Shown: positions 13,001 through 48,568, counted from the stretch's first letter. The stretch is 64,000 nucleotides of DNA from Zancudomyces culisetae HAW-14-8 (GCA_052426225.1 JBNJNM010000009.1:1302001-1366000); one strand, 5' to 3'. The notes: generated by a model from the letters alone, not told the origin. Numbers and translations are program-made.

Positions 13001-13285
13001 TGTAAGTACCAGAACATAGAAGCAGTCAAAATAATGCTGGGGTACGGTGTGGATGTAGGCGCAAAAAGTAATAGAGCACTTTACTGGGCCTGTTTAAAGG
13101 GTAACCTTAGCTTAATCAGAACTTTAGTCGAACATGGGATTAATTGTAATAGATTTAATGGCGTTGCACGACTGTGGGCATCACTAGGAAAGCAAAATGA
13201 TGCTTTAGCTATGCTGGACGCGCTTGGTGTATCAACAGATGTACCACACCACCAAGAATGCTCGAGTGGTGGTACAGAAATATAG
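10001..13285 (+). CDS. Ankyrin-repeat protein with N-terminal F-box-like motif
   Basis: N-terminal FNCLPLEILEQVF..ALVNR; many ankyrin units (GNFEMADFYIKMGADVN, GNVSIVKFLLESGADIH, GNLSLIRTLVEHGIN); single 1094-aa ORF. Confidence 0.85.
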   Translation: MVTTFNCLPLEILEQVFIQSQNTEFALVNRCCYYASQSILAQAKFVFNEFGRNNIFQSYCGVPFRYPRLLNNKELVNLLIIDGANITSDHQYIFKIAIKNGWKDTVDLMVNTFNIGHQEQYIEINHMSINFLINLKTKTCRKLYTSNDEVKDIVVRPAIDINSEGNVALKLAVLKNDVATIKILLECHNINLNKEVLNTILPHWVEKNVVSVECHSRVNINSIEDLTSAVVNKERMDSLQCLLLQGLDLKGFYNDALVLSSESNRNDIVVILLNDKEKVRANHIFVLSWACRRKEVQLVYHIFGIANYTQDEVKDMLSLCSKYGCVEIAVFLIGRLAETVDDLAKYLLEACEFGNFEMADFYIKMGADVNFNNGKALTVACQNSYLSIVDLLIQKGVKIDDNNNEPLINACRSGSIEITKRLLENGVDVNKNCPEVVVASCQSNNYELIELMYKSGVDFCVLDKYPELLRTINFRNENVMFLLKKNLGIHKISSEILNTSLVEDNIDVAELLVVNSNKKLKIGRNALIHICKYGNIGNITRVFSRKHKIRYSGKLAITYSCVGGNRQAFEYFATRNSPLPNNISALMQCCFMGKIELLTRLMALGMDITVLNNKLLRFSCRLGNVSIVKFLLESGADIHANNDECLKTATKYQNTNMALLLLKYGANVHVDNEVVLRDAVYYNNIELINMYVRHGANLFVNSFDLLFHAIKAKNVGMFAYLYRYYFEQKGHMVKPVDKSTETPSLLNVADLVYSMCLHALIYSESVVTRQNNEIKLVSDVCRTYSEKYAFYRNSGNFLQDIHDAIQHHNGNAKNASAQLVQEYLRYFSSRAAVSDIFSERANRILKKCMMRYIKSNNIKMLMFTISQVVQNLVVRCDLMYFKCLERGKKLISESLRLTYLRIPPCYMDILEKLDSIGDFIVSYGLGIIYKSKAHRAISSHNKIIGSLDSLIQIIESNKNEKIVSLYEEFILSIKSLNYYQTTINTYMKSSCLAEELYICACKYQNIEAVKIMLGYGVDVGAKSNRALYWACLKGNLSLIRTLVEHGINCNRFNGVARLWASLGKQNDALAMLDALGVSTDVPHHQECSSGGTEI

Positions 13286-19862: not shown

Positions 19863-22800
19863 TTAGAACCTCCTTTGTTTAAGAGATGAAGGGGGTACTT
19901 GTATTTTAGAGGGCTGGGTACCCGATTTGGGGAAGCAAAAGAGCGAATCATTTCCAAAGTTTTTTTCATTGGAGGAAACTTGAGGTTTGGTAGACGGTGA
20001 AGGCATAGGAATAGGAATCGGGCTCGAGGAATGCTCGATGGATTGTTTTTGGTAGGGCTGAGACTGAGACTGAGACTGAGACTGAGATGGAGTTTTGGGC
20101 TTAGTTAAAGTTGAAGTTCGGGCTGAAGGTGAGGCTGACGCTGAGGTGGATGGAGATGTTGGGATAGGACGGGGTATGGGAACGTTTGAGGGAATGGTGC
20201 GGGAAAGAGCCGGTGATTGGTGCCGTAGCTGGTTTAGCTTAGATTCGGAATCGGCATTTAAGATGGCATTGTGTTGTTCTAGCCGTACCTCCAGATCCCA
20301 AACTTTGTTTTTCAAATCATTGATCACTGTGTGCAAAGGGTTAAGAGTAGACATAGAATTCAAGGCAGAAATATCCTGTTGGCTTTGTGGGATTAGGAGG
20401 GAAAGCATTCCAGAGTTCAACATTGGATGTAGCTGTTCTGAAAAATGTCTTCTCTTTGCTGTTTCCATGAGCCAATACTTGTCAAACGCCTGCAACTGAA
20501 ATAAGGCATCAAACGCGGCCCATCGGATACAATCATCATTATGAAAGCAAAAGCTCCCTAAAAGCTCAAGTGCACGGGTATATAGTCTGTTATCAGAACA
20601 ACTTGTTCTTGCAGACAGAGAAATGGCGTTTATGGCAGAGGGTAGTACCCTAGTGCACTCTAACCCGCTGTTCTCTAGTCTATCCAGTATAAAGCCAAGG
20701 CTTTGATTTTCGCCTGGAACCTTTGAGATTCCCACAAACAATCCACGACGCACCAAAGGATGTGTATATAATGTCTGGGTACGCTGAGACAAAAGGTTTG
20801 AAAAAGTGTCAAAACCGTCGAATTGCTTCTGATTTCCTAAGGCATTATATGCATTGGAAAGAGAGTGAAGACCGAGGCTCGGGTCGAGGATTTTTGATTG
20901 AATGGAATGGAGTAAACATATCGAAGAGATCGAAGAGCAGTACGAAAATAAATGCGCTAAAGCTATAGGATGAGTTTCTGTAGAAATCAGCTCCGATAAC
21001 AGCTCATGGGCCTCTCTGGAATGCAGCTTGGCCAAACTCTTTCCTGCAAACATACGCACTCCGTAGTGAGATTCATTTCTAAGCCTCATTTTTACCGCCT
21101 GTAACAAATTTGGATAGCCACTTTTTATGGCTGTTTCATAGGCAAATATTCTGGAGCGAACATCTCTTGCTCTCTCAGCCATATTCAAAAGCAGATCAAA
21201 TCCAGGATTGAATTCTAGGGTGAAGAGCATATTGAGATTTGGATCGATAGATATATGAGATGGTCGTGTGCCTTCAGGCAGCTGAATAACAGCTAAGGCT
21301 CTTGTGTTTTGGTCGAAACTGAGAATTTCTCTATGGCAACCTCCGCTAGAATCCACAAGTTCTATTTCAATATCGAACCCAAACCAAACTATTGGATAGT
21401 CTCTAATCCTATCGCTACTTTGATCAAGTGTTATTTGAACCAACCCTTTGCTTGGTTGATATTGGAGATGACATCTTATTCGCGGATATCCTACGCCATA
21501 AACGAACTCGTCAAAGAATCTGTCCAAGGACTTTCCGCTTGCAGCCTCCAACCCTCTTTTAAACATCGCTGTATCCACCAAAGTTCCTCGATTATCCACC
21601 AGAAACCTTTTTACGCTACTCCAAAACACGTTCTTGCCCAACCTTCGCTCAAGCATGTGTACCCGCCAAGCTGCTCCCTCGTAACCGTGATAGTCATGAA
21701 GCTGAGCACTACTGCTATATTTATTGAATGCCAAAGGTCTCTGGTAAGCAGTACACTCCTCGGTGTATCTTTTGGCCGCCATGACCATGTGAAAATCAAA
21801 TTCGTCCTTTTCGTCGTTTTTACCCTGCCATAACGACTCGAAGTATGTCGCAAAGCCGTTTTTCAGCCACATACTATCGAAATAATTAATTCCAACCATA
21901 TTTCCGAAATAAGATTTAGCGATATCAGATATAATAAATGACTCTGACCGTTCTTGCAACTCATCAGTAGTTTGTGCCTCTAGCAAAAGTGTTGATGGGT
22001 AGATTGACAGGCTAGACCCCTCAGAGGTATATCTCGCTCTTGGAATAATCGCATAGTCATATTTTATAAAATCGCCTATTTATAGATTTTAATACAAATA
22101 AAATGCCAAGTAAAGAATCGTTATAACCCACACTCTGGGATATTACCTACCTTCGATCCCAATTACATCCGAGACAAATTTGATCATTTCCAAAGTCTTT
22201 GAGAATGTTTTCTCGATGTCTTCTCTTTTGATTTCCTTTGTATAATAATATCCTAATTTTACACTTTCACTAGCCTCATAAAAATGTTTATTTAATTTTC
22301 CAAGAACAAACCCAAATTGAGATGCAGAAATAGGTGTGTCAACTAAATATTCGGATTTCTTCATATGGATATTATCAAAGGTTAAAACTTCGCTGGTATT
22401 AAGCCATACCCCACTAGTAACACATTCATGATCAACTTGATGAATAATAGTTATGTTCATTGTCGAGCGGTTATTTGGATAGTCAATACATGGAAGATAG
22501 TACCGCGCACTATTTCGATTATATGACAATAGTTTCCCCTTCATCAATAATGTTACGCGCTCAAGTAATCAAAGTACAATACTGCAAAACACCAAAAGAG
22601 GGAAAAATAAAATAAAGTAAAGTAAATACCTTTCATCGCTATTATCTGTGAACGCCAGTATTGATTGATCCAAGTAATGGTTGTCGGGCTTCGGTACCTG
22701 AAAGTTGACTCCGCTGATTGGCGTAGTTACCTCCCATTTTATCCTAATCTCCCTACACTCTTCACCCTCGAAGCATTTTCCCCATACTATGTCAATAAAG

Positions 22801-23298
22801 TGGCCGTCATACCTCCAACTCTTGATATTTTCTCCTGTAACATCGACCCTGACAAAATCAATTGCATTCAGTTTGATTTGTGAACGTTCGTTCTCATTGG
22901 CCAACAAACATTCGCGTCTATGTACAATGTTATATGTAGCCTCGCCAAATATACGCTGATCATACAGGCTTATTTCAAGATATAGATCTATAGTGAAATA
23001 GTAGTCCAATATAGTTTACCAATATAATTGGGTTGGTTATGTACTATTAAGATGAACAAACACTAAGCTACGACGTGTGACTCTCGCCAAAAAAAAGGTG
23101 TGCATTTGCACCGTCAAAATCAACAATGCAAAGATAAATGGGTTAGATCATACCTATGTGGGAAATCTCTAGTATTGTGTCGGGAGCATATTTTGGTGTC
23201 GAGCGGGTGATTTCATCCTCGATTTTCGAAGATTTATTTCTTTGATAAATGGATTTAATTGATTTGTGGTATATACTACGAGCATAAACATCCTCCAT
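19863..23298 (-). CDS. M1-family aminopeptidase-like protein with helical/HEAT-like C-terminus, catalytically degenerate; exons 23298-23154, 22987-22630, 22509-22151, 22075-19863 (~1024 aa)
   Basis: KYAPD..HIDLYL, ARYYLPCIDYP, FGNMV...WLKNGFATYFE, Y..AAWRVHML, FFDEFVY..GYP are M1 fold motifs. Three GT..AG introns have consistent phases (1,2,1). Confidence 0.8.
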
Positions 23299-24104: not shown

Positions 24105-25982
24105 TCATTTGTTATATGAGGCGACAAGGTACTTTGCAGCAATAGTGACAGGTCTGTCGACGAGAAGGTACGAATTGATAACGAAACCGGCATCTCTAAC
24201 ATGTCCCAAAACAGTATCGCGGTACTGTTGAGAGCGGACAATAACAGAACCAGCAAGAGCCAGGTCAGTTGATTTTGCGTTATTTCGTTTCAACAAGGCA
24301 ATGATAAAGTTGGCAAGACATCTTGCCTCAGTTTCAACAATTTTTAGGGCAATCTCGTCATGTTGCTCGTAGGCGCACTCAAGAACTATTTTAGAGAGAC
24401 TTGAGATTTCAATTCTCTGTGCTTCAGGAGTCATAGAACGGATAAAGTTAACAAACTCAAGTCTTTTTTTGGCGTTCCATTTTGCGCATACAGCATCTGT
24501 CATTTTAGTTGAGGGGCCAGCCTTCTCCAAGTCCATTGACACAGCCTTGATACAAGCAGTTCCTAGAGCATTTCCAGAGCCTTGATCTCCCAAAACAGGA
24601 CCCCAGCCACCACAAACATCAATTCCGCCATCTGCCAAAGCGCCCAAAACAGAGCTACCGGTTCCTGCGATTACGGAAACTGATAGGGAATCAGCGGTGG
24701 ATTTGGGCAATGAGGATGAGAACAGTTCAACATCAGATGTAATAGTAACTTCAGGTGCCAAATGCTTAAGTTTTTCTGTCAATTCACGTCTTTTAGTTTG
24801 TTCACCCATACCGGCCAAGCCTAACCAACACTTCTTGATAGCCAAGTCTCTTCTTTCACCTTTAGCCTTAGCTACAGCCTCTTCAATTCTAGAAACGATC
24901 ACATCAATTGAAACTGTCGAGTTGTTGGTGCTTCCAACAATGCCCTCTCCAATTACTTCACCATCCAGCTTGAGCAGCAAGACTCTGGTGTTGGTTCCAC
25001 CTCCATCGGTAACCATCAACACTGGTACTGGGTGCTCGGTATCTGTTGAGTTTGCTGCTCTGGCGGCTCCAATTGCTCTGGCCAAAACACCACCATTGCT
25101 GGCGAGAAGATTTCTTGCTTTCTCGGGGTCTACCTTGGCCAATATACTCATAATCGCTACCTTTACTTCACCATCACATTTACTTAAAACATCTAGTGCT
25201 TCTTCTTGTGATACATTTGTTATTTCTCGTACAATCTTGGGAGCTCTCATCCTGAGTTTTTCATTTGTTGGTCTAAAATCAACCATCAAATTGCTATATG
25301 TCTTTCCTAATTTTATCATGGCTCCTGTACTCAACATGTTGAGAACCAGCTTTTGTGCAGTGCCTGACTTCATACGAGTGGACCCTGTGACCACCTCTGG
25401 TCCAACGTCAGGTGAGAGTAGAATATCAGAGTGCTCTTTAAGCATTGAGTAGGAGTTTGTTGAGAGCCCAATTGTGAGTGCTCCTTGTTCTCTGGCATAG
25501 TCAAGTGCTCCAATTACATACGGCGTACGACCACTGGCTGCGATTCCTACAACTGTGTCCACGTCTCTTATATTTAAGGCTGCGCAGTCCGCTCTTCCTG
25601 TTTCAACTGAATCTTCTACATTTTCTTTAGCTGATCTGATGGCTTCGTCACCTCCAGCCATTACTCCAACCACTTGGTCTGGGTGGGTGCTGTATGTAGG
25701 TGGACATTCACTAGCATCTAATACTCCCAATCTTCCACTAGTACCTGCACCAAAATACAACAACCTTCCGCCTTTTGCCATTCTTTCAGCAATTCCGTCA
25801 ACAGCACGAATGATGTCATCAAGAACTGATTCTACGGCAAATGGAACTGTTTTGTCCTGATTGTTGAGGAGAGTAAGCATCTCCTTTGTGGACATTGTGT
25901 CAATTCCCATTGACTGAGGGTTTCTTGACTCTGTGCGAAGTTTACTAAGCACAGAGAGACTTTCCGATACTAGATCACTCAT
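24105..25982 (-). CDS. murQ: N-acetylmuramic acid 6-phosphate etherase (MurQ) fused to a C-terminal BadF/BadG/BcrA/BcrD-type (MurK/NAGK-like) amino-sugar kinase
   Basis: TESRNP, GAGTSGRLGVLDASECPPTY, ENVED, IAASGRTPY, GPEVVTGSTRMKSGTAQKLVLNMLST, NLMVD..TNEKL (MurQ); DGGGTNT, GLAG, IAGTGS, GGWGPVLGDQGSG (ASKHA BadF-type kinase). Confidence 0.93.
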   Translation of the reverse strand: MSDLVSESLSVLSKLRTESRNPQSMGIDTMSTKEMLTLLNNQDKTVPFAVESVLDDIIRAVDGIAERMAKGGRLLYFGAGTSGRLGVLDASECPPTYSTHPDQVVGVMAGGDEAIRSAKENVEDSVETGRADCAALNIRDVDTVVGIAASGRTPYVIGALDYAREQGALTIGLSTNSYSMLKEHSDILLSPDVGPEVVTGSTRMKSGTAQKLVLNMLSTGAMIKLGKTYSNLMVDFRPTNEKLRMRAPKIVREITNVSQEEALDVLSKCDGEVKVAIMSILAKVDPEKARNLLASNGGVLARAIGAARAANSTDTEHPVPVLMVTDGGGTNTRVLLLKLDGEVIGEGIVGSTNNSTVSIDVIVSRIEEAVAKAKGERRDLAIKKCWLGLAGMGEQTKRRELTEKLKHLAPEVTITSDVELFSSSLPKSTADSLSVSVIAGTGSSVLGALADGGIDVCGGWGPVLGDQGSGNALGTACIKAVSMDLEKAGPSTKMTDAVCAKWNAKKRLEFVNFIRSMTPEAQRIEISSLSKIVLECAYEQHDEIALKIVETEARCLANFIIALLKRNNAKSTDLALAGSVIVRSQQYRDTVLGHVRDAGFVINSYLLVDRPVTIAAKYLVASYNK

Positions 25983-27624
25983 GTTTACGTTATTGTTTGT
26001 TTGAATTTTCCTTTTTTCACTGCTTAAGGATACTTTTTTTTCTAGTGAAAAATATGTAGTATTTATTTCAAATAGGTTTAATTATCAAGAGAGGAAATAT
26101 AGGATGATCAGTAAAAAAAAACTTAAATCTTTGATTCAGTTAAAATTAGAATTGTAATTGGAATTGCAATTAAAAATGAAAAACATAAACCCGTTGCTTT
26201 GATTTTTAGTTTCCCATATTTCACATTTTTGTTACAGAAAGACAAAGAAAGATCCTTTTCCACATTTAATTCGACCTTGAAAAGCTGCACATTAAATCCA
26301 ACAAGTTCATGCCCAAAAATTATTAGGTATAACAAATGAAATTAATGGGAGCATTATTTTAATGTTTTGTTGTGACCATTAAAAGAAAATGTAAGATTGG
26401 TTGTGTATACTCTGAAACAAATTTATGAATGCGTTTATTTTTTTTTGGTGGAGATTACAAATATATTTGGTAATAGTTATTATGGATTTTTGTAAATCAG
26501 CCGAACATTTTTCCAAAGTGATATCTGGCAATCATAAATTGTTAGATATTTTGCGCAAAAAAAAACACTTGTAAGGGTAAAGAATGTGAAGGGGGTAGGT
26601 TATAGCGTGACAAAAAATAAAATAACGGATTACGTGATAAGGAAAGTTGAATGTATAGCCAAAAAGAATTTATGCACCGAGATAAAATCCGGATAATAAA
26701 CCAAGTGAACCAAGGCCCTAACAAACAACATCAGATCCTAATACCCAGTGTTGGAAATCGCTGTTTCCACATTAAAAGACTTGCCGAAGTTCGACATAAC
26801 ACATCTTACCCAACAAGTCTCAGGAAAAGGTGAATCGAGCAGAGCATCGAACATCTCGCCATTCTTTGTTTGAATATAAATTAAAATTTAAACCAGGAGC
26901 AATTACTAAAAGGTGGTGCAGAGACTAGAAAGAAAATGATGAGGTTTTTTAAGGCCTTCAATTCTGTGAAGGTGTAGGGAATTTGGTGTACCAGAGTTAA
27001 ATTGAATGTGCATCCCTAACACAAATGAAATAAACTACAGGCCAACAATTATAGATGATGTTTTCAAAGTTAGAAAACTGAAACTAGTTCATTTTGTCAT
27101 GTATACTTTGGTAATGACTAGAAAAAAAGTTTAAACCCTTTACACAAACTCAAAAAAAAACACAGAATATACTCCATACTATGAATGATCTTTATGGAGG
27201 TGCTTCTCAACAAAAAGCTAAGGAGTAAAGGCACATTAAACTTGTTACACAAAAGTCAAAGTTAATCAGGCAAAAGCTTTAGGAGTTTGTTGATTAATAA
27301 AGTAATACTACCTACTAAGGAGTGGTGAACTCCATTATTAATTTGCAAAGAATTTTTGGTAAGTGCTTGTATTTCGAGTATGTACACCACAAAAATAGTA
27401 TTTCAAAAGTATTTCGTCAGCACAAAATGAATAAAATTAAAGTTATGGGATATCAAATGATGTATCGTATCCCGATTTTGAGCAGAAAAAAATGGAATTC
27501 AAAAAATGATAATGTGATTATATTTGATAAGCTAATTATTAGGTATCAAGAAAAAAGAGGAAAATTTTCTAAATGGGATTATATCAATGCAGATAATTAT
27601 ATGAAAATCACAAATTAGACCAAA

Positions 27625-28872
27625 CTATTTCTCGATAACCAACTTGACAGTTCTATCAAAGCTCTGAACTGGTTCTTGTGCTATCTTGCGAATCAACTCA
27701 TGATAGTTTGATCCTGGTGTGATCTTACCAAGAACTGTATATTGTGATGCTCCAGTACACGATGGGATTTGACCTGGTCGGCCGTGTATACATTCATGAC
27801 CAATAAGTGCAAACATTGCTGCCTCTTTGCATGAAGCTGGTAATCCATACTCTTCTTTTGTCAAAAGTGTTACTTTTGTATTTGGTAGTCCCTTTCTAAT
27901 TCCTTCCATAACTACAGGATTGAAACCTCCTCCTCCATGAACAAAGATCTCCTCTACTGGCTCTGGCATAAAATCGTGGTATGATTGAACAACTGTGTCT
28001 ATTGTCAGCTGTGTGATGGTAGCAACCACATCATCTGGAGACATGTTTAGTTCTTCACATCTCTTAATCACCTCATCTGCATACGAATCGCTAAAAAGCT
28101 CACGTCCAGTGGTCTTTGGTAGCTGTTTCTTGTAGTATGGATTCTGCAAAAGCTCCTGCAATAACTCTGTGTTAACTTTACCACGAGATGCCATCTGACC
28201 ATCCTTATCAAATTGTTGTTGTCCACCAGTATAGTGTCTTACGGCGCGATCAATCAAAACGTTTGAAGGTCCTTGATCAAATGCAAACGCTGTGATTATT
28301 CCATTTTTCATTGATACGAATGTGGTGTTTGAAATTCCTCCCAAGTTTTGGTAAGCTCTTGTTCTTCCTTCCTCTGCACATAAAACAACATCCAAGAATG
28401 AAGTCAATGGTGCTCCCTGTCCTCCGTAAACCATATCTGCTACTCTCATATCATTTACAACTGTTCTCCCTGTTTCTTTGACAATCACCGACGATTCTCC
28501 GTTTTGCCATGTAGATTTGACCTCAGAGTCATCATCAACTTGATGCCACATAGTAATACCATGTGGTGCAATAACATCAACATCATCGTTTGTTAGTCCA
28601 TTCTTGTCCAAAAACTGACGAATAGCATCGGCAAACGCTTTTCCCACAAGGAAGTTCAACTGTGTTATTTCAGCTAGGTCTCCAGACTTTTTGTTAATCA
28701 TGCTCAATATTCTCTGCTTCAGCTTAATGTCATGAGGAACTTCATCATAGGCAATAACTTTTAATGACAGAGTACCTGTACCGTTTTCATTACGTTCCAC
28801 CTGTTTGAATTCACACAATGCGAGGTCAATACCGTCACATGCGGTTCCGCTGTTCATTCCAAGAACTCTCAT
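27625..28872 (-). CDS. anmK: Anhydro-N-acetylmuramic acid kinase (AnmK/levoglucosan kinase family)
   Basis: LGMNSGTACDGID, HGITMWH, DMRVADMVYGGQGAPL, QNLGGISN, FDQGPSNVLID, FDKDG, PKTTGRELF, GGGGFN, KEAAMFA, PSCTGA. Confidence 0.9.
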   Translation of the reverse strand: MRVLGMNSGTACDGIDLALCEFKQVERNENGTGTLSLKVIAYDEVPHDIKLKQRILSMINKKSGDLAEITQLNFLVGKAFADAIRQFLDKNGLTNDDVDVIAPHGITMWHQVDDDSEVKSTWQNGESSVIVKETGRTVVNDMRVADMVYGGQGAPLTSFLDVVLCAEEGRTRAYQNLGGISNTTFVSMKNGIITAFAFDQGPSNVLIDRAVRHYTGGQQQFDKDGQMASRGKVNTELLQELLQNPYYKKQLPKTTGRELFSDSYADEVIKRCEELNMSPDDVVATITQLTIDTVVQSYHDFMPEPVEEIFVHGGGGFNPVVMEGIRKGLPNTKVTLLTKEEYGLPASCKEAAMFALIGHECIHGRPGQIPSCTGASQYTVLGKITPGSNYHELIRKIAQEPVQSFDRTVKLVIEK

Positions 28873-29259
28873 TTTTAATGTATTTTTCTTGTAGTTTTCC
28901 TTTTTTTAGATCACTTGTTGATTCAAAGTTTATAGACTAGTCTTTAATAATCAGACCCAGATATTTGTTTTCAGCTTTATTGAGTTTTGATGAACAAAGA
29001 ACAAAGCCGGTGATAGATATATTTGTTGTTACTCTATTTACCGAAACCCGAGATGGATAAATAGGTGAACTTATACATTTTTCATTAACAATAAATGGAC
29101 GTAAAAAAAATATACGTTTTTCATTTAAAACCAAGATCCAAAATGTGAATATTCAAATAGGCGAGAATTGTCATTCTAGTAATTTACAGGCCTGAAAATT
29201 ATTGTAATAGAACATGTTTGAAAAATGAAGTAATACTGGAAAATGTAAATGAGACGAAT

Positions 29260-29310
29260 AAAAATGAAAAAATAAATGAAAAAAATGAAAAAAATGAAAA
29301 AAATGAAAAA
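29260..29310 (+). repeat. Tandem 9-mer (AAAAAATGA)n upstream of anmK
   Basis: Repeated aaaaatga units visible. Confidence 0.7.
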
Positions 29311-31100
29311 GTAGTACTGAATAGGACAACATTAAAGATAGACATTTATGTTGTGGCAGAGAAAACATAAAATTATGGCCAGAGCTTGAGGCAATATAAA
29401 AAAAAACCGCACGACCTGCTCTGCTTTACAAAAATGAGATGATTCACCATTTGAACTTGTGTTTTCTGCACAGATATTGCTTGATGGCCATAAACATGGA
29501 TATAAACATGGCCATAAACATAGACACTCTTTGAGAATTAGGTAATAAGGGGGTTATTAGCTAATTGAAGCCAGTTTCATTTCCCAAAGCCAATTCGATG
29601 CTTTTCTATTTTTACTTGGAAAAATATCCAATGAACAACATATCAATAGCCAATCTGGGACCTTGGAGGGGGGGAAAGGGGGTATAATCACATATTTTGG
29701 GTATCAATGGAGTACAGGTATGTAAATTGTCAACAAGGTATAAACAAACTTGGTTTTGGGTTTCATAAAGTAGCTGCTGAAACAGTATTTTTGGTCTTAA
29801 TTGACGAATGCATTTATGCCAGTATAAATTATCGAGAAAAAAGTCTTGTGGTTTAAATCTCGAAGATAACTTAAGTTTGTTTAAATTAATTTTTTGATTT
29901 CCAGCATTTTATTGGTGTTGATTTATCTATATACACATCATTTTTGTGCACCTTTTAAATCTTTCAGGATCAATTGCACGGTGCTTGCTATTTGTAATAA
30001 TCCCGAATTCCATTCCGCTTTAAAGTTTAAATTTAAATGCAAAGCAATTTGATAATTTCCACTAAAAGTAACTTAATATGGTATTTTTGGTGACTGTCTA
30101 GTCCAGTTAAAATCAATTAGATCTTTTCCTTTATTTGGAAGAAAACAAAATTTGCTTTCCAGGTCATAACTGTCACTTGTGTTTTTTCGCTAATCAACTG
30201 GCAATCAACTGAAGTTTCACTAAGGACCTTAAAACAAACATATTATAGATTATTTATAAAATAGACTTGGATTTGTTTATTTCTACTTTGCTAAGTTTGT
30301 ACAAAGCACCAATCCTGCATTTCAGGTTAAAGTTTCACTCAAAAGTACCTCATTGCTTAGAATCAACTCTTCCCACATCTATTCACAAAAAATGAAAGCA
30401 GTATGCGCTATGTTGGGATCAAGCTATTTAGATATTTAACAATAGCACTTTATGGTGCAATGTTGTAAGCTATGCATCATGAAAGCTAAGTTGATCAAAT
30501 TTCTTTGCTCTAGTGGAATGCTAATATGTCATGAATATATTGACCCATTAGGTTAGGCTGTAAAAGCAAAAAAAAATTTTATGTTACACGTAAAATGTAA
30601 ATCATTTTGTCATATAATTTAAAATCATTTTATATCACTCCATTTGCAATTACTAAAAATATTTATCTTCCAAAATTAGATAATTCATTTACGGGATAGG
30701 TCATAAATGATTGCAATATTGTACCACCTCATTTAAAACGCGTAATGAAGTAAATTTCGTTTAAAATATTATGATTGAAATTACCTATCGACTAAAATAT
30801 ATATCAAAAAAATTTTACAAATCGGCTCATGTCCCTGTAGTTCCGAGAAACGAATTAAAATATACATTTTGAATTCACAAGTTAGTGATTTCAAAAGTTG
30901 GGAAAGTAGAGGTGAAATGGTAGTAACCATTTTATTGTTTATTTTAGTGATATCCAACATGTTGGTCTGTTAGTGATCAAAAAAAGAATATAAATACTTT
31001 AGCAAAACCTCGTCTACCGAAACTCAAAGATTTTTGATAGAGAATCTGCTTTGCTAAAAATATAATTTATAATCTTTAACAACTAGATATCACTATCGCT

Positions 31101-32540
31101 ATGAGTGACAAGGAGAAGCAGGAATTAACAACCATCAATCAGGATGAGGTTCTCACTCCCAGAGAACAAACAGTCGTCAAGCAATACCTCAAAAAGGTAG
31201 ACATCAGAATCCTTCCCATATTCTCATTGGTATACCTACTCGCTGTCATGGACCGTGCTAACATTGGATCTGCTATTAACCTGGGTCTTGGTGACACCGT
31301 CAAATTCACCAAACAACAAGCTCCATGGAACGTATCTATTTTTTTCGTATTCTACATCATCTGTGAAACACCAGCAAATATCCTTTTGAAGAAACTCAAG
31401 CCACATATCTGGTTCACAATCATTGTCTGCGGTTGGTCAATTACATGTATCTTGATGACTTGGGCTAGAACCCCAGCAACTCTATTGACAGCCAGAGGCT
31501 TCTTGGGTGCCTTCGAATCCGGTCTTACACCAGGAGTGGTTGGATACATGCCATACTGGTACACTCGATCTGAAATTGGTTTACGTATGTCCATCTTCTT
31601 TGCTGCAGGTACACTTTCAGGTGTGTTTGGAGGACCGATCGCTGTGGGCCTCTCTAGTCTTACCATTGGAAACATTCCTTCGTATGCAATCATCTTCCTT
31701 ATTGAAGGTATAGTATCCCTTTTAGTCGGTATCTCACTTTACTTCCTTGTGTACGATTACCCAGACACAGTCAAGTTCTTTACCCCTGAAGAAAAGGAAC
31801 TCATTGTCCGCAGAATCACCAATGATCAAGGTCTCGCCTCAAAGACAAGCATGTCAATGAAACAAACTATCAACGCACTATTAGACTGGAAAATGTGGCT
31901 ATATGCCGTTATGTTCTTTGCTGTCAACTTTGCCGGTGTAACTCTTGGTGTATTTGGACCTGTACTTGTATCATCTTTGGGATTCAGCAGTATTAGAGGA
32001 ACTTTGATGTCATCACTTCCTAACGCTGCCGGATTTATTGGACAACTTCTGACAGGATACACAATGGCTAGATTCCCATTGTGGTTGAACTCTATTGTCT
32101 TTGCAGCTATTGGATGTTTCGGTATCTGTATGGTCGCATTCACACACTTCTCACCAGTGCCAAAACTTATTATGTTGTGTATTGGTGGATTCGGAGTGTT
32201 CCCAAATATTCCAATCATTGCCACATGGATGTCTATTAACATGGGAGGTATTTCGAAGCGTATGGTTGCATCTGCAATGACAGTATCATTTGGTGGTATT
32301 GCAGGTATCACCGCACCACTTGCCTTCAACAAGGAGCTATATGCACCTAAGTTCACATTGGGTTTGGCTCTTAACACAGCATGTTTGGCACTCATTTGCG
32401 TTCTCGCTTTGTTCTTCAAGTTCTACTATGATATGGAGAACAGAAGAAGAGATAACAACCCAGTAGATGTATCACACCTGTCAGAGTTTGAACAACGTGA
32501 ACTCAATGACAAGCACCCAGATTTCAGATACAAACTCTAG
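31101..32540 (+). CDS. MFS transporter, anion:cation symporter (Dal5/Tna1-like) family
   Basis: KKVDIRILP, MDRANIG, RGFLGAFESG, WYTRSEIGLR, IFLIEG, C-terminal DKHPDFRYKL typical of fungal ACS permeases; ~12 hydrophobic segments. Confidence 0.9.
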   Translation: MSDKEKQELTTINQDEVLTPREQTVVKQYLKKVDIRILPIFSLVYLLAVMDRANIGSAINLGLGDTVKFTKQQAPWNVSIFFVFYIICETPANILLKKLKPHIWFTIIVCGWSITCILMTWARTPATLLTARGFLGAFESGLTPGVVGYMPYWYTRSEIGLRMSIFFAAGTLSGVFGGPIAVGLSSLTIGNIPSYAIIFLIEGIVSLLVGISLYFLVYDYPDTVKFFTPEEKELIVRRITNDQGLASKTSMSMKQTINALLDWKMWLYAVMFFAVNFAGVTLGVFGPVLVSSLGFSSIRGTLMSSLPNAAGFIGQLLTGYTMARFPLWLNSIVFAAIGCFGICMVAFTHFSPVPKLIMLCIGGFGVFPNIPIIATWMSINMGGISKRMVASAMTVSFGGIAGITAPLAFNKELYAPKFTLGLALNTACLALICVLALFFKFYYDMENRRRDNNPVDVSHLSEFEQRELNDKHPDFRYKL

Positions 32541-32877
32541 TTTTATTTTTGCTATATCATTTTTGTAGTGCAAATATGAGCTACTCTTATATATTCTGAT
32601 TGTTATTATTGGTAATTAATATGGATAAAATATTCTATCAACATTTTTGAATAAAATATTTATATTTACAGCTATAGGCTGAAAAAAATACAAATGATTC
32701 GTAGAAATATGTCGAATTATTCGCGGTTGCAGCAAAGTTGGATAACGCCGACCCCCTTCCCCCACTCGCACATAAGATTATGTATTTTTTGATTATAACC
32801 TGCTGTTTTGTATATTCCAAATATTTGATCTTGAGTTAAACCTACAACTTATATACACTGAACATAAGCTAGGATTT

Positions 32878-33433
32878 ATGGAGGTGGGGAAGATAAGAAC
32901 AGGTAGGTTCTAGACAGCAGAGAGGCTGGCAAAATTGGGAACAATAGATGAAAAGTTCAAGACTAGATGCCCATTTTGTAAAAAAAAAAACAGCGCTGAA
33001 ACTATTGAACACATGTTACTGGACTGTAAATACTGGGCTGGAGTTAGGTATAAAACTCTGGAACGTATCCCAGATATGTCAATTATAGGAAGTCAGGAGA
33101 GAGGTAGTAGTGAAGGATGGCGGAATTTTTTTGTAGGGCGACTCCTTGGAGGGGAGTCAAAAAGAATGGTTACTCTCTCCGTTAAGAAGAGAGAAACCGA
33201 AGCACCGTCTTTGGTTGAGCTGGTAACGGCACAATTTTTGGACGGAATATGTCGAACGAGGATGCAAATCTTAGACCGACTTAGATCAGAAACAACCTCC
33301 TTGAACCAACGCCCGGTGGGTATGGAGTCCCTAGAGGGACGGAGGGGAATTGGTTAGGTAGATATTTTGTAGGATTATTTTTTGTAGTTTTATGGGATAT
33401 TTATTTAATAAATTCATCTAACAAAAAAAAAAA
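32878..33433 (+). mobile_element. 5'-truncated non-LTR (LINE-like) retrotransposon 3' end
   Basis: KIRTGRF*TAERLAK then CCHC finger CPFC....ETIEHMLLDC; ends AATAAATTCATCTAAC plus A11. Confidence 0.75.
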
Positions 33434-40095: not shown

Positions 40096-42165
40096 TGTTG
40101 ATAACTTGAAACTCAGTACCAAAACTGAATTAATACATATAATTAATGTACTATTATTAGATACCAATATTATACACATAATATTGATATTAACTAATCA
40201 ACACACAGTTAATTTATAAAAGTTATTATTAATTATACTAGTTTAAAACACACAGTAATAATATAATATTATTTAATAATATCTTTATATTGTTAAACGA
40301 GATTGACAAACTTAATTGTTCATGAAAGGGATTAGTATCTCCTTATACAATTAAGTTTGTACTAAAACTTTAATATAAACTAAAACTATTAATATAACTA
40401 ATATAAATAAACAAATAAACTAATATCATTAATATACACAATATTAATGATGATACATTATATATTGATCATGTGTATCAATATTAATGTTTTTAACTAA
40501 TTATTAAATAATAATTAAATAATATAAACTAATAATCAATTAACATTATATTTTAATATACAATATTGTTATGATACATGTGTATTCATAACACTCCCCC
40601 CCTCTTAAGGTTACTTACAGATGTTTTTTATTCAGATTCGCGTTCGTTTTGGATCTTGCTGAGCCAAAATTCTTGTATTTTTTCATGAGCGTTAACATCC
40701 TGTTCACGCTCCCAACTTCGCTCTTAAGGTCCATATCCTTCGTAATCAATGTAATAATATGTGGTACCATCAATTTCTTTTGTATCCAAAATTTTATTTA
40801 CCACATATTCTATTTCATTATTGATGATAACTGGTGATGGTGGTCTGATGTCTGGTCGTATCACTAATTCTGATGTGTGATATTTTTCTAGTTATGATAC
40901 ATGAAATACTGGATGTATCTACATGTTTGGTGGTAATTGTAGCTTAAATGTGACGTCGTTTATTATTCCTATAACCATGTATGGACCTATCTTTTTGTTG
41001 TCCAACTTATTTGTAGGCCTTGTAGTTTGTATATTTTTTCTTATTAACCATACTTTATCACCTATTTTAAACTTTGGATGTCGTTTTCGGTTTCTGTCAG
41101 CAAACTTTTTACCAGTTTTAATTGCATTTCGTAACACTTTTTTGATGTCGTCGTGATGTTTTTCTAGTTCTATAACACGGTTTTCAGCACTTGGAATTAA
41201 CTCAATAGTTGGTATTTGCGGAGTAAATGAAGTATCTAAAACCATATAATGCTTTAAATGGTGACATCTTTATTGCACTGTGATATGCATTATTGTATGA
41301 ATATTCAGCTAACGGAAGTAGTTTGCACCAGTTATCTTGCATGTAGTCACTGTAACACCTCAAATATTGCTCCAATGTTTGATTAGTACGCTCAGTTTGA
41401 CCATTAGTTTCAGGGTGATAAGCACTTGAAAGTTTTATTTTTACGTTTAATAGTTCGTAAAAACGCTTCCAAAACTTGCTTATAAACTGAGATCCTCTAT
41501 CAGAAATGATTTCATCAGGTGTACCATGTAGTTTAAACACGTTTTTAATGTATGCAGTAACAGTTTCGGGTGAAGTCGGCAACTTTTTAAATGGTATGAA
41601 ATGTGCCATTTTAGTATATCTATCAACAATAGCCATTATTGTTGTATACCCATTTGACTTTGGTAAATCTGTAATGAAGTCCATAGTTATAGATTTCCAT
41701 GGTCCAGGTGCTATAGGTAACGGTTGAAGCAATCCATACTGTTTATGTCTGTTAGATTTATTTTTTTGACATACATCACATGTATTAATGTATTCTTTTA
41801 CATATTTCATTTTTTGTTTTATAAAATAGTTTCGATCCAAATTTTTTATTGTTTTATGTATCCCAAATTGTCCAGCTGCACCTGAAAAATGAACTTCTTG
41901 AAGTAATTGCATCCTTAGTACATCAGGTACATATATTTTTTCATTTATATATATTAAACCATTACGTTTTATAATAATATCAGATTCTTTTAGTAGATGA
42001 TTTAAATCATTAATATCAATACATTCTGCTCAATATATGAATTAATGTTGTTTAAAAGTTCACTTTGTGGTATTATGATTACATTAATAAAGTGTTTTCC
42101 CTCAATAATATTGTGATTTATCACTTTTGAATCATCACTATTACTATATCTTGAAAGTGCATCAG
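40096..42165 (-). mobile_element. Decayed Ty3/Gypsy chromovirus 3' half (element C): end of RNase H, integrase, chromodomain, PPT, 3' LTR ~40593-40096
   Basis: DALSR at the 42165 end, CDVCQ zinc finger, MDFITDLP, SDRGSQF, HPETNGQTER, KKIGPY, chromodomain EYVVNKILD..ERSWE with stops; PPT AAGAGGGGGGGAG followed by TGTTATG at 40593. Confidence 0.85.
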
Positions 42166-42374
42166 TGTCATGAATATGACATGAAAAGATTTTGAATTAG
42201 TATTGTTACAATACTGATTCAAAACACTTATTTTAATTGAAACATTTTGTTGTTTTAATCATTTACTTAAGTAATGATACTAACACAAAACCAAAATTAT
42301 AATTATAACATTAATCTTACAATAGTTAATTATAATATTAGTACATGTTTTTATTATTATGCTTCACTTATCCA

Positions 42375-42643
42375 GATACAATTATGTGTGTACCAATCTT
42401 TATTATAAATCGTAAATTCTTTCCTAGATACTATTTTTATCGATTAATCCATTACCTTAAAATTTGGTAAAAAATTAAATCGATAAAAAGAGTGTTTAAA
42501 TTTAAAAACTTTATACGTAATGATGTGTGTAATGACAGACATCACTGTATAATTTTTATAAAATAAGTAAAACTAACTAAATAAAATAAATTTAAACCAT
42601 ATATAAACTGATGTCCCCTGTTTCCTGATGAATCTTTACCATC
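42375..42643 (+). repeat. DIRS left ITR core
   Basis: Near-perfect reverse complement of 59051-59319. Confidence 0.92.
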
Positions 42644-42720
42644 TTTTCTTTCGCTAGGTACTCAACCAGCTTATAAAAAATACATAGTATTTATAAAAGT
42701 CATTAGTTAAATTTTCAATA

Positions 42721-43602
42721 ATGAGTCAAAATGCAAACGTTACAGTTGAAGTTTTGCAACAGATTTTGGAGAGATTATCAGCTCTTGAAAAACAAACCGC
42801 ACCAAATGATCACATGTCAGTATCAGAAATCAGTGATTCAGCAAACATCACTGCTCCATCAATCGTTGATGCAGTCGACGATGATTCAGTTGAAAACTTC
42901 GTGGTTCCCAGACCAACACCATCAGACCTGGTCATGTATCCAAAACTGCAAAAGGCGCTACCAACAGTTGAACAGGATTTCTTTTGGACACCACTGGCAG
43001 ATGTTGAACGCAAGAAGTTTTACGCAGCCATCCCAAGAAACTCTGGCATGGATTATGAACCACCAGAGGAAAACATCAAGTTATCAGGTGACGATAAACG
43101 TACTGATGCGATGTTATATGACATCCAGTACCGTTTATCAGCCGTTACAAGACCTTTGGATTACTTCATGCACGAAGCAATCCGTGACGGAGGTGCAGTC
43201 AGTGCCGAAAAACTTGCAGTTTTTATCAACTCAATCAGAGTTTTACTTGCGGATGTTGCATCCAATATCACGCAACAAAGAATCAAACTGTCGTACAAAG
43301 CCTCAGGAGTACCATCAGATCCTCCAGAAATGGTTTCAACATCAAGGAAGCCTCTCGTGGACATACAGCAGATGTTCGAAGTTAAAGCAGCTGCAAATAC
43401 ATTGCAGCGTGCAACAAAAAATGTGCAGCAGAGAAGACCAAGATTCAACGCAACCAGGACCTTCCCAAGCATTCCGTTTCAGCCATCAGTTAACCAGAAT
43501 GTTCAAGCAGAGCCGCAGCAGATCCAACAACAACGACAACACAAATCCGCTGCTACTGGCGGTAATTTTCGGTTTGCAAACAGCAGCAAACACCGAAAGT
43601 AG
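42721..43602 (+). CDS. DIRS ORF1 (gag-like)
   Basis: First ORF after the left ITR; LYDIQYRLSAVTRPLD motif; 293 aa. Confidence 0.8.
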   Translation: MSQNANVTVEVLQQILERLSALEKQTAPNDHMSVSEISDSANITAPSIVDAVDDDSVENFVVPRPTPSDLVMYPKLQKALPTVEQDFFWTPLADVERKKFYAAIPRNSGMDYEPPEENIKLSGDDKRTDAMLYDIQYRLSAVTRPLDYFMHEAIRDGGAVSAEKLAVFINSIRVLLADVASNITQQRIKLSYKASGVPSDPPEMVSTSRKPLVDIQQMFEVKAAANTLQRATKNVQQRRPRFNATRTFPSIPFQPSVNQNVQAEPQQIQQQRQHKSAATGGNFRFANSSKHRK

Positions 43603-43616
43603 GAGGGAGACTGAGG

Positions 43617-46199
43617 ATGTTCCAGGAGGCTTGGATGCGCCTCACAGATCACAAATGGATACTCCAAGTGATCTCAGAAGGGTTCAGAATCCCCTTCAAA
43701 ACGCATCCACCGACGATCAAGCAGAAAAAACCGTTCGGTTACAACTTGAAAAAGCTTCCAGAGAAAGTGGTCGAACAGGAGATATCAAACCTCCTGTCAA
43801 AGAAAGCAATAGAGGAAGCTTCATCCGCGCAGCCAGGGTTCTACTCAAATCCGTTTACAATCCCACAGCGACATTTCAAGATGGAGTCGCTTACAACCAT
43901 CTCCAGAATGATTCGCAAAGGGGATTATATGACCAGCATAGGCCTCAGCGATGCTTTTCTACACGTATTGATCAACAAAACGTCCAGGAAGTATCTCAGG
44001 TTTACATGGGGCGGTCGCACCTACCAGTACAGGGTGCTCCCATTTGGTCTATCTTTAAGCCCACTAGTATTCACAAAAATACTAAAACCAGTACTGAAAT
44101 GGGCCAGAGCTCGCGTGTTAGGAACGGCCAATTCCTGGAACATAATTTTTAGTTACATTTTGGCCTACTAAAAATCTAACCTATTTTATTATTTCATTTC
44201 CGGTTTTCTAATATGCCATTCCGACATTGGAATCATGTTTGCAAAATTCACCATGAATTTTCTGATTTTATTATTGGGAAAATTTACTAAGCAAAATCAA
44301 GAAATTTTCCAATAATTAAATTTAACAAAAATCCTTGAAAAAATTGGATAACCAAATCCATGATAAAATTGGATATACAAAATCCATGAGAAATTGATAA
44401 ACCAAATCAATGTTAAAATCGATAAACAAAAACCATGATAAAATCGATAAACAAAAACCATGATAAAATCGATAAACAAAATCAATGTTAAAATTGATAA
44501 ACAAAATCAATGTTAAAATTGATAAACAAAATCAATGTTAAAATTGATAAACCATATCTATGTTAAAATCAACAAATGAAAATTACAAGTTTCACGATAA
44601 GTAGATACCTAAAACTAGTTCAATTTTACATAGACAAATTTTATAGCTAAGATTTATTGACTTTAAGTTTTTCTTCACAGTAAAATTCTCTGATGAAAAA
44701 TTATATAAACCCTTCGAAATTCCGTTGGGATACATCAGAGAAAAATATATATTGATCAACACATCAAATATTATATTTTTCTAAATACTTACTTCTCCCT
44801 AAATAAATATTAATCAAGCATAACAAATCTCTACTCCAAGTTATAAGCAGCTCATTGTTTATAACATCGCGGGATACGAATGTCGAGCTACTTAGACGAT
44901 TTGTTAATCTTAGGATCAACAAAAACAGAGTGTCTGAAGTTCACAAATATGGTTTCCAAGAAACTGGTGAAACTGGGATTCCTGATCAACCAGGAAAAGT
45001 CATCAATACATCCCAAACAATGTATTACGCATCTTGGGATGGACATCAACAGCCGTCAGATGAGTTTCAAGATACCCAAACAGAAACTCAAAGATTTAGC
45101 GAGAGAGGCATCCAGGTTGATACACAAAGGGTGTACAACACTGAAGGATCTGGCATCATTCATTGGCAAAACGCAGGCAGTGAATATAGCACTCAGACCA
45201 GGACGACTGATGAGCAGGAGGTTGTTAGAGCTCAAAAACAACACTCTGAAACGCACCACGGATTGGAGTTCACAAGTAACACTGAATCAGCCCGCACTGG
45301 ACAATCTGACGTGGTGGAGGGACCATCTGAAGCAATGGAATGGTCTATGCTTATTTCCGGAGATCCCAGAGATAGAAGTATATACGGATGCGAGCGACAA
45401 TCACTGGGGGATAGTGATAGACAGCAATCAGTATACGGGGACATGGACACGACAACAGATGAAGCTCCCTATCAATGCGAAGGAATTATTAGCAATCCAG
45501 TATGCAGTGAAGCTGCCGCAGGTTCAGGGAAAGAGTGTTGTTGTATATTGCGACAACAACACTTCAATCAGCTACATCAAGAAGCATGGGGGAACCAAAT
45601 CAGTGAATCTGATGGACATTTCGGAAGCAATTTGGAAACATTGCATCAGCAATGGCACTCGGGTTCAGATTCAGTATGTGCCATCAATACTGAATCCAGC
45701 GGATGCACCATCACGTTTAACAGCTCAAACAGAGTGGTCACTATCAGACAAGATGTTTCAGAAGATACAGAAACAGTTCGGTCCACACGATGTGGACCTG
45801 TTTGTCAACAACAACAACCACAAACTACCAACATTTGTGAGTTGGAAATGGACACCAGAAGCAGCAAAAACGAATGCATTCAATCATCATTGGAGCATTT
45901 GGACGAATCCATACCTTTGTTCACCATGGAATCTGATACAGAAAACACTACAGAAGATCAGACAGGACAAGGTATCAGCGACATTGATAACACCGTTTTG
46001 GAGGTCAGCACCATGGTATCCAGATCTCAAGAGCATGCTAATAGCTCCACCGATCAAGATATTAGCTCCACAGATAATTCCGGATCCAAAAAGCGGAAAG
46101 CAAGTGACACAGATAAACAAAACATGGTCGCTTACGGCTTGGAAATTAAGCGCGCACGTCTTGAAAAAACTGGTTAAAAAGATTCAGTTATCACGTTAA
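43617..46199 (+). pseudogene. DIRS RT / RNase H / N6-adenine methyltransferase-like ORF, split by a solo LTR
   Basis: VGGRL..F...W just upstream, HFKMES, LPFGLSLSP, then after the insertion GIRMSSYLDD; TDAS, INAKEL, DNNT, NPADAPSR (RNase H); DVDLF...NAF..W...PW (MT-like). Confidence 0.9.
44116..44866 (+). mobile_element. Solo LTR (751 bp) with 5-bp TSD TCGCG
   Basis: TGTTA...TAACA termini; TCGCG at 44111-44115 and 44867-44871; removal restores ARARGIRMSSYLDD. Internal ~25-bp tandem repeats at ~44350-44570. Confidence 0.92.
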
Positions 46200-48568
46200 T
46201 GACAACTGGCAAACGAAATATGGCAAAACAAAAACAATATTATAACATCAAGGTAAAGTTTATTAAGTGGTTAGAGTCTGCAAAACTTGATATTAATAAC
46301 GTTTCAGTTGTTGATGTTATCAATTTCCTTGATGAACATCGTATTAGTAACAATTTAAAAGTTGGTACTATAAAAAACTACAAGTCTGCTATCATCGATA
46401 TTAATGCAGAATGGCGAACATTTAGCAGCGATATTTTGATGATTGATTATTTAAAACAGCTCGATTCAACTTCAGTTCGATCTTTTAACAACCCTAACTA
46501 CGATATTAATCCGATTATTGAACATATTAAAAATTTTGGTTCAAATTTTAAAATGAGCAAGCAAAACTTAACAATTAAATTTTGTAGGTTGCTAGCAATT
46601 TGTGGATTTTTAAGACCTTCTGACATTGAACGAATAGACGATTCAAAGACGGAAATCAATAAAGATTATGTTAAATTTGTTATTGTTGGACCAAAAGAAA
46701 AGCGAAGTGGAAATCCGATTGAAAAGGTCAGTATAATCCACGCACATAGCGACTATAAATTATGTCCTGTAGTAACATACAGAGCATATAAAAAACGCAT
46801 TGCAACTTTTCCGAGTGTTGCAAACCATCCGATCCTCGATGGAGTACAATTGCACTACCTTATCCGCAACTTAAAGTATAACGACAAACACATTGGGGCA
46901 CAACGAATCAGTAAACACATTAATTTATTGATGTCACTCTTGCAGTTGCCAGAATGCGCAAAGTTACCAAAAGCATGAGCATTAGGATCCATCAGAGCTA
47001 CAAAGCTAGTGTCATGAACTGATTCTAGAATGTTCGAAAACGTTCTAGAATCATCGGATTTTATTCCGCAGTAATGTTTAGAATGTTCCCCAACATTCTA
47101 GAACATTACCGAAAATTCACATTATTTATTAATTTTTATTACGTAATAATTTTCACATGTTTAATTTTAATAGCATTCGAGTTTGAATTTTGTTTGATTA
47201 CTAATCCAATTTGATTAGTAATCAAACACGTTTTTCTTTAGCTTGAATTTTTAGCTATTCCGCAGTTTTCATAGTGATTATGTTCAAAAACCAAGGCTGG
47301 AAAAAAGTATAAAAAGGGTACAAATTTCCTGTCTTGGATTCAGTATCTAGTATCTTGTATACATTCATACAATAAACTTTAATAATAATAAATATAACTT
47401 TCCAGACTCCAGATCTTGACACTATACTAGATCAAAATATTATATGTATTATTTTCTGAAACCAGCCTAAGTATTTTAACCATGGAACCGTTTAGCCCAG
47501 AACAAGTTGAATTCCTCAACAAAGCCGCCGTGACCCTGCCAGCAGTTGAAGAAGCCCTCCAGCAACTACTAATAAGAGTAGAAAAAGCCGAGTCTGCCAT
47601 CAAGGAACACCCTGCCACAGTATCCAAGAAAATTTATGACAAGGTCAAAGCAGACACTACCAAGTCCATCCAGACCATTCTTGACTCCATGAACAACCTC
47701 CAGTCCGATATCCAGAATTCAGACCAGCTAACCCAAAGCGCCATACAGGCCAACCAGTTGGAAATCCAATCCCTTCAGGACCAGCTCAGTACCCTCAGGA
47801 ACGAAGTCATACTTTATATAACTGAAAACCGTGCCACCAAAGTTGCTAGTACTTCTGAACCTAGTATCAAAGTAAGACACCCAGACACATTTTCAGGAAA
47901 ACCCTCCGCCTGTTCCAACTTCTTTTCACAGCTTGCTCTCGTCTTTGCCGCTTCACCCGATAAATTCAACACAGACTCAAGTAAAGTCTTGTATGCCATC
48001 TCCTACCTCTCAGGCACACCATTCAGTTACATGGAACCTTACCTCATGAAAGCAAACCTTCCAGAGTCTGACCGTCCTGCCATCCTCTCCAACTACAATC
48101 TGTTTAAAGAAACTATCACTCGTGTCATGATTTATCATGCCATTTGTAATTAAATACACGTGTTGTATTTAATTACTAAATTGCTGCGCAATTTTGTCAA
48201 AAATCATTTTGGGAAATTTAATTTTGTTGATTGCGCAGTAGATTAGGTAATTTAGAAACGTGTTAAAATTACGACATTTTGCTGCGCAATTACACGTTTT
48301 ACATTACTAATCAATTGATTATTAATCATTCTAGAATTCTAACATTCTAGAATTTTCTAAATAGTTATAACAATGTTTTTCATAGTTTTTTAGTAGTTTT
48401 GGAAAAGTATATATAGCCATAGATTTTATTGAAAGAGAACTTCAGCAATAAAATATCTTCACAAGATATATACTACTTTAAATAACTAAATAATATAAAA
48501 TAAAATAATACTTAGTTGTCAGGTCCTGACATTATTTTATTGCTACTTCAACTACCTATTATTTTACC

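Follow-up and report, generated by a model that had tools for sequence, protein, structure and literature searches.

Why should a fungus carry, side by side, genes for breaking down a sugar of the bacterial cell wall? The window analysed here is a stretch of 64,000 nucleotides (JBNJNM010000009.1:1302001-1366000) from strain HAW-14-8 of Zancudomyces culisetae, a Harpellales gut fungus of mosquito larvae. It contains a locus of three genes, coding for a MurQ etherase fused to a sugar kinase (murQK), an anhydro-sugar kinase (anmK) and an ACS-family MFS permease. To our knowledge MurNAc-6P, the 6-phosphate of N-acetylmuramic acid (MurNAc), is the sole substrate of MurQ etherases, and is supplied by bacterial walls alone. 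We propose, with a probability of roughly three in four, that the locus supplies the cytosolic half of a fungal pathway for salvaging peptidoglycan amino sugars. Its parts, in window coordinates, are as follows.

24105-25982, minus strand: murQK, a fusion of a MurQ etherase and a BadF/MurK/NAGK-type kinase; 625 amino acids, intronless open reading frame
24108-25028, minus strand: kinase domain of murQK, residues ~319-624
25061-25982, minus strand: MurQ domain of murQK, residues ~12-305
25983-27624: spacer between anmK and murQK (upstream region of murQK), 1.6 kb, AT-rich
27625-28872, minus strand: anmK, an anhydro-sugar kinase of the AnmK/levoglucosan-kinase family; 415 amino acids, intronless open reading frame
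28873-31100: divergent intergenic region between anmK and the permease gene, of which only 28873-29789 is common to a downstream duplicate
31101-32540, plus strand: ACS-family MFS permease, candidate importer of MurNAc and its 1,6-anhydro form (anhMurNAc); 479 amino acids, intronless open reading frame

A preliminary description of this DNA had placed three adjacent intronless genes here, with murQK and anmK co-oriented and the permease divergent, and the open reading frames bear this out exactly in position and strand. The anmK stop lies 1,642 bp from the murQK start, 2,228 bp separate anmK from the permease gene, and no further open reading frame of at least 100 amino acids is present in the intergenic gaps of the locus. 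By simple arithmetic, the chance of murQK and anmK being adjacent among the about 8,484 genes of Z. culisetae (PMC12611240) is ~0.05%. GenBank already names both enzymes MurQ and AnmK, and the 625-residue murQK product is identical to a GenBank Z. culisetae protein.

The MurQ equivalog model TIGR00274 matches residues 15-304 of murQK with 385 bits (cut-off 302), and the BadF domain PF01869 covers residues 326-588. The MurQ domain is 54% identical to Yersinia MurQ (4s12) and 59-60% identical across the Harpellales; it retains the GTSGR loop (residues 80-84), Glu92 and Glu123, and the two glutamates align with E86 and E117 of 4s12 and are invariant in 67 homologues. In Escherichia coli MurQ we take Glu83 and Glu114 to be the catalytic glutamates and GTSGR to be the phosphate loop. 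The AlphaFold model of murQK (pLDDT 95) predicts a SIS fold with a helical C-terminal domain for the MurQ part, with a root-mean-square deviation of 1.1-1.3 Å (1.2 Å to 4s12) and a target TM-score of 0.96. The kinase domain retains DGGGT (with Asp326), the catalytic Asp417, GTGS and GGWG..GD, and is modelled as an ASKHA fold; its top PDB sequence match is the Clostridium acetobutylicum MurK 8zo3 (TM-score 0.86). At 64.8 bits for 8zo3 versus 60.8 bits for human NAGK these scores do not tell specificity, the preference for MurNAc or N-acetylglucosamine (GlcNAc) not being readable from kinase sequence (PMC10465942); we argue for a preference for MurNAc because the kinase is fused to MurQ. Judged by sequence and model, murQK is an intact putative MurNAc-6-phosphate etherase joined to a MurK/NAGK-type kinase, with the catalytic residues kept.

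The anmK product scores 320 bits against PF03702 and 401.6 bits against NF007148 (cut-off 387), both above cut-off, and all six substrate and catalytic residues named for AnmK (bioRxiv 2026.03.13.711553) are retained, D13, T107, R143, N182, D199 and E350 being the equivalents of Pseudomonas D14, T97, R129, N168, D182 and E326. The earlier call of an anmK gene is sound as to family. These six residues do not decide the substrate because levoglucosan kinase has them too, and the Gln that precedes the T97 equivalent is Ile in the Z. culisetae protein only. The Harpellales proteins are like bacterial AnmK and unlike the levoglucosan-kinase clade in three motifs close to the site (W-H, Q-x-G and G-G-Q-G). 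Context and motifs together favour anhMurNAc over levoglucosan as the presumed substrate.

Genes that would release such sugars from the wall, and others that would consume the product, were found elsewhere in the genome.

G000:C15:20008, C15:55579, C21:1645203 and C21:2614387 (L037-L039): four copies of the NamZ/GH171 exo-muramidase
G000:C11:4312863-4314773 (L040:1375-3285): NagZ, two-domain Bacillus-type, family GH3
G000:C7:44077-49813 (L147): nagB-nagA divergent pair

Three NamZ copies are open and one has an in-frame stop (TAA); they have hydrophobic, signal-peptide-like N-termini and retain the GPEH and SEGRG motifs, and their nearest relatives are orthologues in five other Harpellales species, then Streptomyces-type proteins. 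The nagZ gene is the only GH3 gene, and its product, with a hydrophobic N-terminus and with the D-x-H dyad and nucleophile retained, scores 531 bits to Bacillus subtilis NagZ versus 201 to the solved fungal-type 4zm6. In B. subtilis, NagZ, AmiE and NamZ jointly release GlcNAc, MurNAc and anhMurNAc (PMC8054146), and by family these products are the likely substrates of the two kinases in the window. To the extent that sequence can tell, the genome holds a near-complete predicted salvage route for peptidoglycan glycan, and the preliminary reading of a flow from MurNAc and anhMurNAc through MurNAc-6P to GlcNAc-6P and D-lactate is strengthened by the secreted-type NamZ, NagZ, nagA-nagB and the linkage in Smittium simulii described below. 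The 800 bp upstream of nagZ contain seven CRCAAA words (background mean 1.1, maximum 3), which are not enriched at the cluster; nagZ is possibly under Ndt80-family control.

The route that we infer from these genes, in its activities, transport, flux and expression, would run as follows. NagZ and NamZ, presumed from their families and signal-peptide-like N-termini to be secreted and active, would shorten wall glycan fragments at their non-reducing ends, yielding GlcNAc, MurNAc and, from the chain terminus, anhMurNAc. Stem-peptide removal and endo-cleavage would be supplied by gut bacteria or the insect host, because no enzyme for either was found in the genome. The ACS permease, judging from its family and conserved linkage, would bring in the anionic sugar acids; AnmK would open and phosphorylate anhMurNAc to MurNAc-6P, the fused kinase would phosphorylate MurNAc (probably GlcNAc too) to yield MurNAc-6P, and the MurQ domain would split MurNAc-6P into GlcNAc-6P and D-lactate. 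GlcNAc-6P could then pass via NagA and NagB to fructose-6P and ammonium, feeding glycolysis and nitrogen supply, or alternatively to UDP-GlcNAc and chitin, an established fungal pathway. The catabolic fate seems at least as likely as the routing to chitin.

The permease is the weakest link in this route, with about even odds that it imports MurNAc and anhMurNAc as its family and linkage would suggest. It matches MFS_1 (PF07690) with 123 bits and ACS-type models score best, the top subfamily model, ACS/DgoT (TIGR00893), giving 180 bits, under its cut-off of 395. Linkage was compared in four related assemblies with short contigs, using 10-kb flanks: the three-gene cluster was found in none of the four, but an anmK-permease pair is present in S. 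simulii, where an ACS permease lies 867 bp from anmK in convergent orientation. Among the 21 Z. culisetae paralogues tested, the best match of this S. simulii permease is the window permease (45% identity, 438 bits versus 320 for the next). Furculomyces murQK and S. simulii anmK each have a Syf1-like gene nearby, and the ankyrin gene at 10001-13285 of the window has a similar counterpart close to anmK in Furculomyces; these common neighbours hint that murQK and anmK may once have shared one ancestral neighbourhood.

In the three ascomycete loci read, anmK and murQK are unlinked, but Penicillium murQK and the two anmK genes are all divergent from MFS genes. The Penicillium paradoxum murQ-kinase fusion (L043:7785-12140) is divergent from an UNC-93/Ngt1-like permease, and is linked to that gene, not to anmK; this permease is a second candidate fungal MurNAc importer. 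In Aspergillus melleus and Sporothrix schenckii (L034, L035) a sugar-porter gene is divergent from the anmK/levoglucosan-kinase gene and a Zn2Cys6 regulator is close by; in A. melleus the kinase gene further has a GH2 gene next to it and a SIS-domain gene nearby.

Both anmK and the permease gene, with 99% identity, are present a second time 40 kb downstream in Z. culisetae, which the preliminary description had missed, and murQK is single copy.

G000:C9:1370050-1371294: second anmK copy
G000:C9:1373434-1374870: second permease copy

The duplication, which appears to be recent, pairs window 27603-29789 and 31101-33425 with G000:C9:1370026-1375760; a portion of the spacer has been replaced. The two copies are separated by retroelements, and the second is followed by a trypsin-family gene. 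Window 41202-58795 is occupied by nested retroelements, with two Ty3/gypsy-type polyproteins (one with a chromodomain) and direct repeats of 409 and 417 bp; unassigned overlapping open reading frames are present at 42721-46978 within this region.

Where did the enzymes come from? Smittium and Furculomyces have orthologues of both with 57-66% identity, and their murQK genes, which adjoin ribosomal-protein genes, have a GT-AG intron at codon 109. The murQ-kinase fusion is also present in many bacteria and, in fungi, in Xylaria, Penicillium, Pochonia and Kuraishia (Ascomycota), Amanita (Basidiomycota) and Umbelopsis, under the name 'glucokinase regulator family protein'. These proteins have the same two domains with 35-40% identity to the window protein, and are uncharacterised in the literature found. 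A mixture-model tree unites all fungal fusions in one clade (support 99/96), within which the branching of Harpellales, Umbelopsis, Amanita and Ascomycota follows the species tree; a Pochonia paralogue in which the etherase active-site loop is altered (P0307) sits on a long branch, and may have changed specificity. The sister of the clade is the protein of a namZ-anmK-murQK operon, grouping with Chloroflexota murQ-kinase genes, for which adjacent murQ and kinase matches were concatenated solely for placement. Harpellales and ascomycete AnmKs nest among Ktedonobacteria (94/93), and bacterial operons are found in the same order, namZ-anmK-murQK (L005) and namZ-anmK-murQ-nagZ (L010).

Since both genes point to the same donor group and share the donor gene order, one ancient operon transfer is favoured, and most likely murQK and anmK descend from a single Chloroflexota (Ktedonobacteria-like) operon that entered an early terrestrial fungus, although sampling of early fungi in the trees is thin; sequence P0275 groups with the Harpellales. 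Z. culisetae would then have kept or regained the murQK-anmK adjacency, and would have obtained NamZ separately from an Actinomycetota-like donor. The sister group of the Harpellales NamZ consists of Actinomycetota sequences (in a tree without ascomycete NamZ), and the Chloroflexota operon NamZ is not its sister, so that a single operon also donating NamZ is rejected. With an Actinomycetota-like NamZ and a Bacillus-like NagZ the route is a mosaic. An Ascomycota-rich NamZ cluster is present in the Atlas. The top BLAST matches are to Gemmataceae, but a Planctomycetota donor is rejected by the trees, which place Chloroflexota as sister. Harpellales and Penicillium murQK have no intron in common (codon 109 versus codons 77, 229 and 356). 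Horizontal origin, suggested earlier as plausible, is supported by these phylogenies against bacterial homologues, which name Chloroflexota as the sister group for murQK and Ktedonobacteria for AnmK; the transfer looks ancient and fungus-wide rather than an arthropod-gut novelty, and a recent gut-specific transfer is not favoured because homologues occur across fungi.

Several observations weigh against the salvage reading. The top PDB match of AnmK is the fungal levoglucosan kinase of Lipomyces starkeyi (332-354 bits versus 165-175 for bacterial AnmK), a kinship that the preliminary description, correct on family membership, had missed; and a tick AnmK that keeps all key residues is ~500-fold slower (bioRxiv 2026.03.13.711553). 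The genome encodes more than 20 ACS-family permease paralogues on many contigs, most of them intronless, and orthology of the S. simulii permease rests on a one-way best match. No murQK lies within 10 kb of anmK in S. simulii, F. boomerangus, S. mucronatum or GCA_003097675, the permease is missing beside anmK in two of them with a readable flank, and no promoter motif common to the pathway genes rises beyond multiple-testing noise. Monophyly of fungal AnmK is weak (81/82), and an approximately unbiased test does not reject a separate Harpellales acquisition (p=0.256). Finally, six-frame genome searches, which intron-split or divergent genes could escape, found neither amidases (PF01510, PF01520, PF00144) nor lysozymes and related enzymes (GH25, GH24, SLT, GH73, also NlpC/P60). 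The gene set cannot demonstrate attack on intact walls by the fungus, which, with no amidase, lysozyme or NlpC/P60 protein found, appears to scavenge fragments that bacteria or the host have opened.

Unlikely in our estimation, yet the most serious of the alternatives, is the possibility that only part of the route is muramic: the fused kinase would be a GlcNAc kinase for chitin sugar from insect cuticle or the fungal wall itself, NagZ a chitobiase, AnmK a kinase for levoglucosan or another anhydro-sugar, and the permease an organic-anion bystander. It is consistent with the finding of no BadF-family kinase in the genome other than that of murQK, with 8zo3 being named a MurNAc/GlcNAc kinase, with the size of the ACS family in Z. 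culisetae and with the levoglucosan use by several fungal AnmK-family proteins that PMC9476349 backs. However, it leaves unexplained an intact MurQ domain conserved across the Harpellales and a NamZ in six species; three hexokinase-family genes in the genome could handle GlcNAc, the AnmK motifs are bacterial-like, and the anmK-permease linkage recurs in S. simulii.

Considerably less probable is that the enzymes clear or sense muramic sugars, whether to remove muropeptide signals from the larval hindgut or to help in competing with bacteria, and serve neither nutrition nor chitin. For the transferred ant murQ and tick anmK a role in defence or symbiosis has been discussed (PMC13320244, bioRxiv 2026.03.13.711553), and NamZ is multiplied in the Z. 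culisetae genome; but exo-glycosidases alone free little from intact peptidoglycan (PMC8054146) and no lytic endo-enzyme was found, while the cytosolic chain would end in a central metabolite with nagA-nagB present. An assembly artefact or bacterial contamination, which the intronless state of all three genes and the bacterial matches next after Harpellales might suggest, is refuted by the intron-bearing orthologues beside ribosomal-protein genes in Smittium and Furculomyces and is contradicted by the 1.4-Mb contig of a long-read assembly (PacBio HiFi, PMC12611240), by coding GC (0.41-0.44) and third-position GC (0.33-0.43) like those of the neighbours, by the left neighbour, an M1-family peptidase gene (19863-23298, co-oriented with murQK) interrupted by GT-AG introns, in keeping with the fungal-type surroundings first described, and by the apparent presence of both enzymes on one 40,127-bp contig of an older assembly.

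Salvage of peptidoglycan sugars, as proposed here, is best compared with the murQ-murR-murP-amiE-nagZ-namZ operon of B. subtilis (PMC8054146), with which Z. culisetae has in common MurQ, a secreted two-domain NagZ (531 bits), NamZ and the presumed end product GlcNAc-6P. The fungus differs in lacking the phosphotransferase system (MurP), MurR and AmiE, in having cytosolic kinases and a presumed MFS importer, and in the dispersal of the genes over four contigs of a eukaryote. The nearest bacterial relatives of murQK and anmK are in the namZ-anmK-murQ-murK-nagZ operons of Ktedonobacteria-like Chloroflexota (L005, L010, L154-L173), which have the same order of anmK then murQ(K) and in some cases the fusion; unlike Z. 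culisetae, Ktedonospora uses an ABC transporter for uptake, and the NamZ of these Chloroflexota is not sister to the fungal protein. L. starkeyi levoglucosan kinase and the fungal AnmK-like proteins (UPF0075) are of the same family as Harpellales AnmK, both placed among Ktedonobacteria AnmKs, but the Harpellales proteins have the bacterial-type motifs that are changed in the levoglucosan-kinase clade and a shorter branch, and Z. culisetae anmK, unlike the genes of that clade, is beside murQK. Ant murQ (PMC13320244), tick AnmK (bioRxiv 2026.03.13.711553) and the Naegleria GKRP etherase (cited in bioRxiv 2026.05.08.723886) are likewise bacterial wall-sugar enzymes, domesticated by eukaryotes that share their life with bacteria or feed on them; these are single enzymes from other donors, whereas in Z. 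culisetae several genes together make up a nearly complete predicted route, candidate transporter included.

Numerous fungi are reported to encode AnmK-like kinases, and fungal peptidoglycan recycling has been cited as speculation (PMC10570956). In the literature searched we found no paper describing a fungal MurQ-kinase fusion, a fungal NamZ or a Harpellales route, and no experimental test of fungal peptidoglycan recycling; a survey of horizontal gene transfer in early-diverging fungi (10.1101/2021.12.02.471044) mentions the genes neither in its text nor in the supplements examined. New here are a secreted-type NamZ, a Bacillus-type NagZ and nagA-nagB that together would make a bacterial-type route near-complete in a fungus. 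The locus is real and coherent, and less unique than first supposed.

A broader proposal, which we offer tentatively and hold at somewhat below even chances, is that terrestrial fungi inherited muramic-acid catabolism from one Chloroflexota operon gained before the split of Zoopagomycota, Mucoromycota and Dikarya. The 'glucokinase regulator family protein' would then be a bifunctional MurNAc kinase-etherase, giving a candidate function to a two-domain protein found across fungi, and 'levoglucosan kinase' would derive from, or still be, an anhMurNAc kinase; the Harpellales would have added NamZ, NagZ and an ACS importer, turning the sugar into biomass including chitin.

Much organic nitrogen is stored in peptidoglycan, and the catabolism of muramic acid is regarded as bacterial. 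Z. culisetae is a culturable fungus with genes for every predicted cytosolic step, for the releasing glycosidases and for a named transporter candidate, and both fungal recycling and the natural substrate of levoglucosan kinase are thereby directly testable. If the proposal is correct, the ACS permease would be a eukaryotic importer of MurNAc and anhMurNAc, and the route may provide a nutritional basis for the interaction of Harpellales with bacteria in the guts of mosquito and black-fly larvae. Fungi, it is predicted, may feed on bacterial cell walls.

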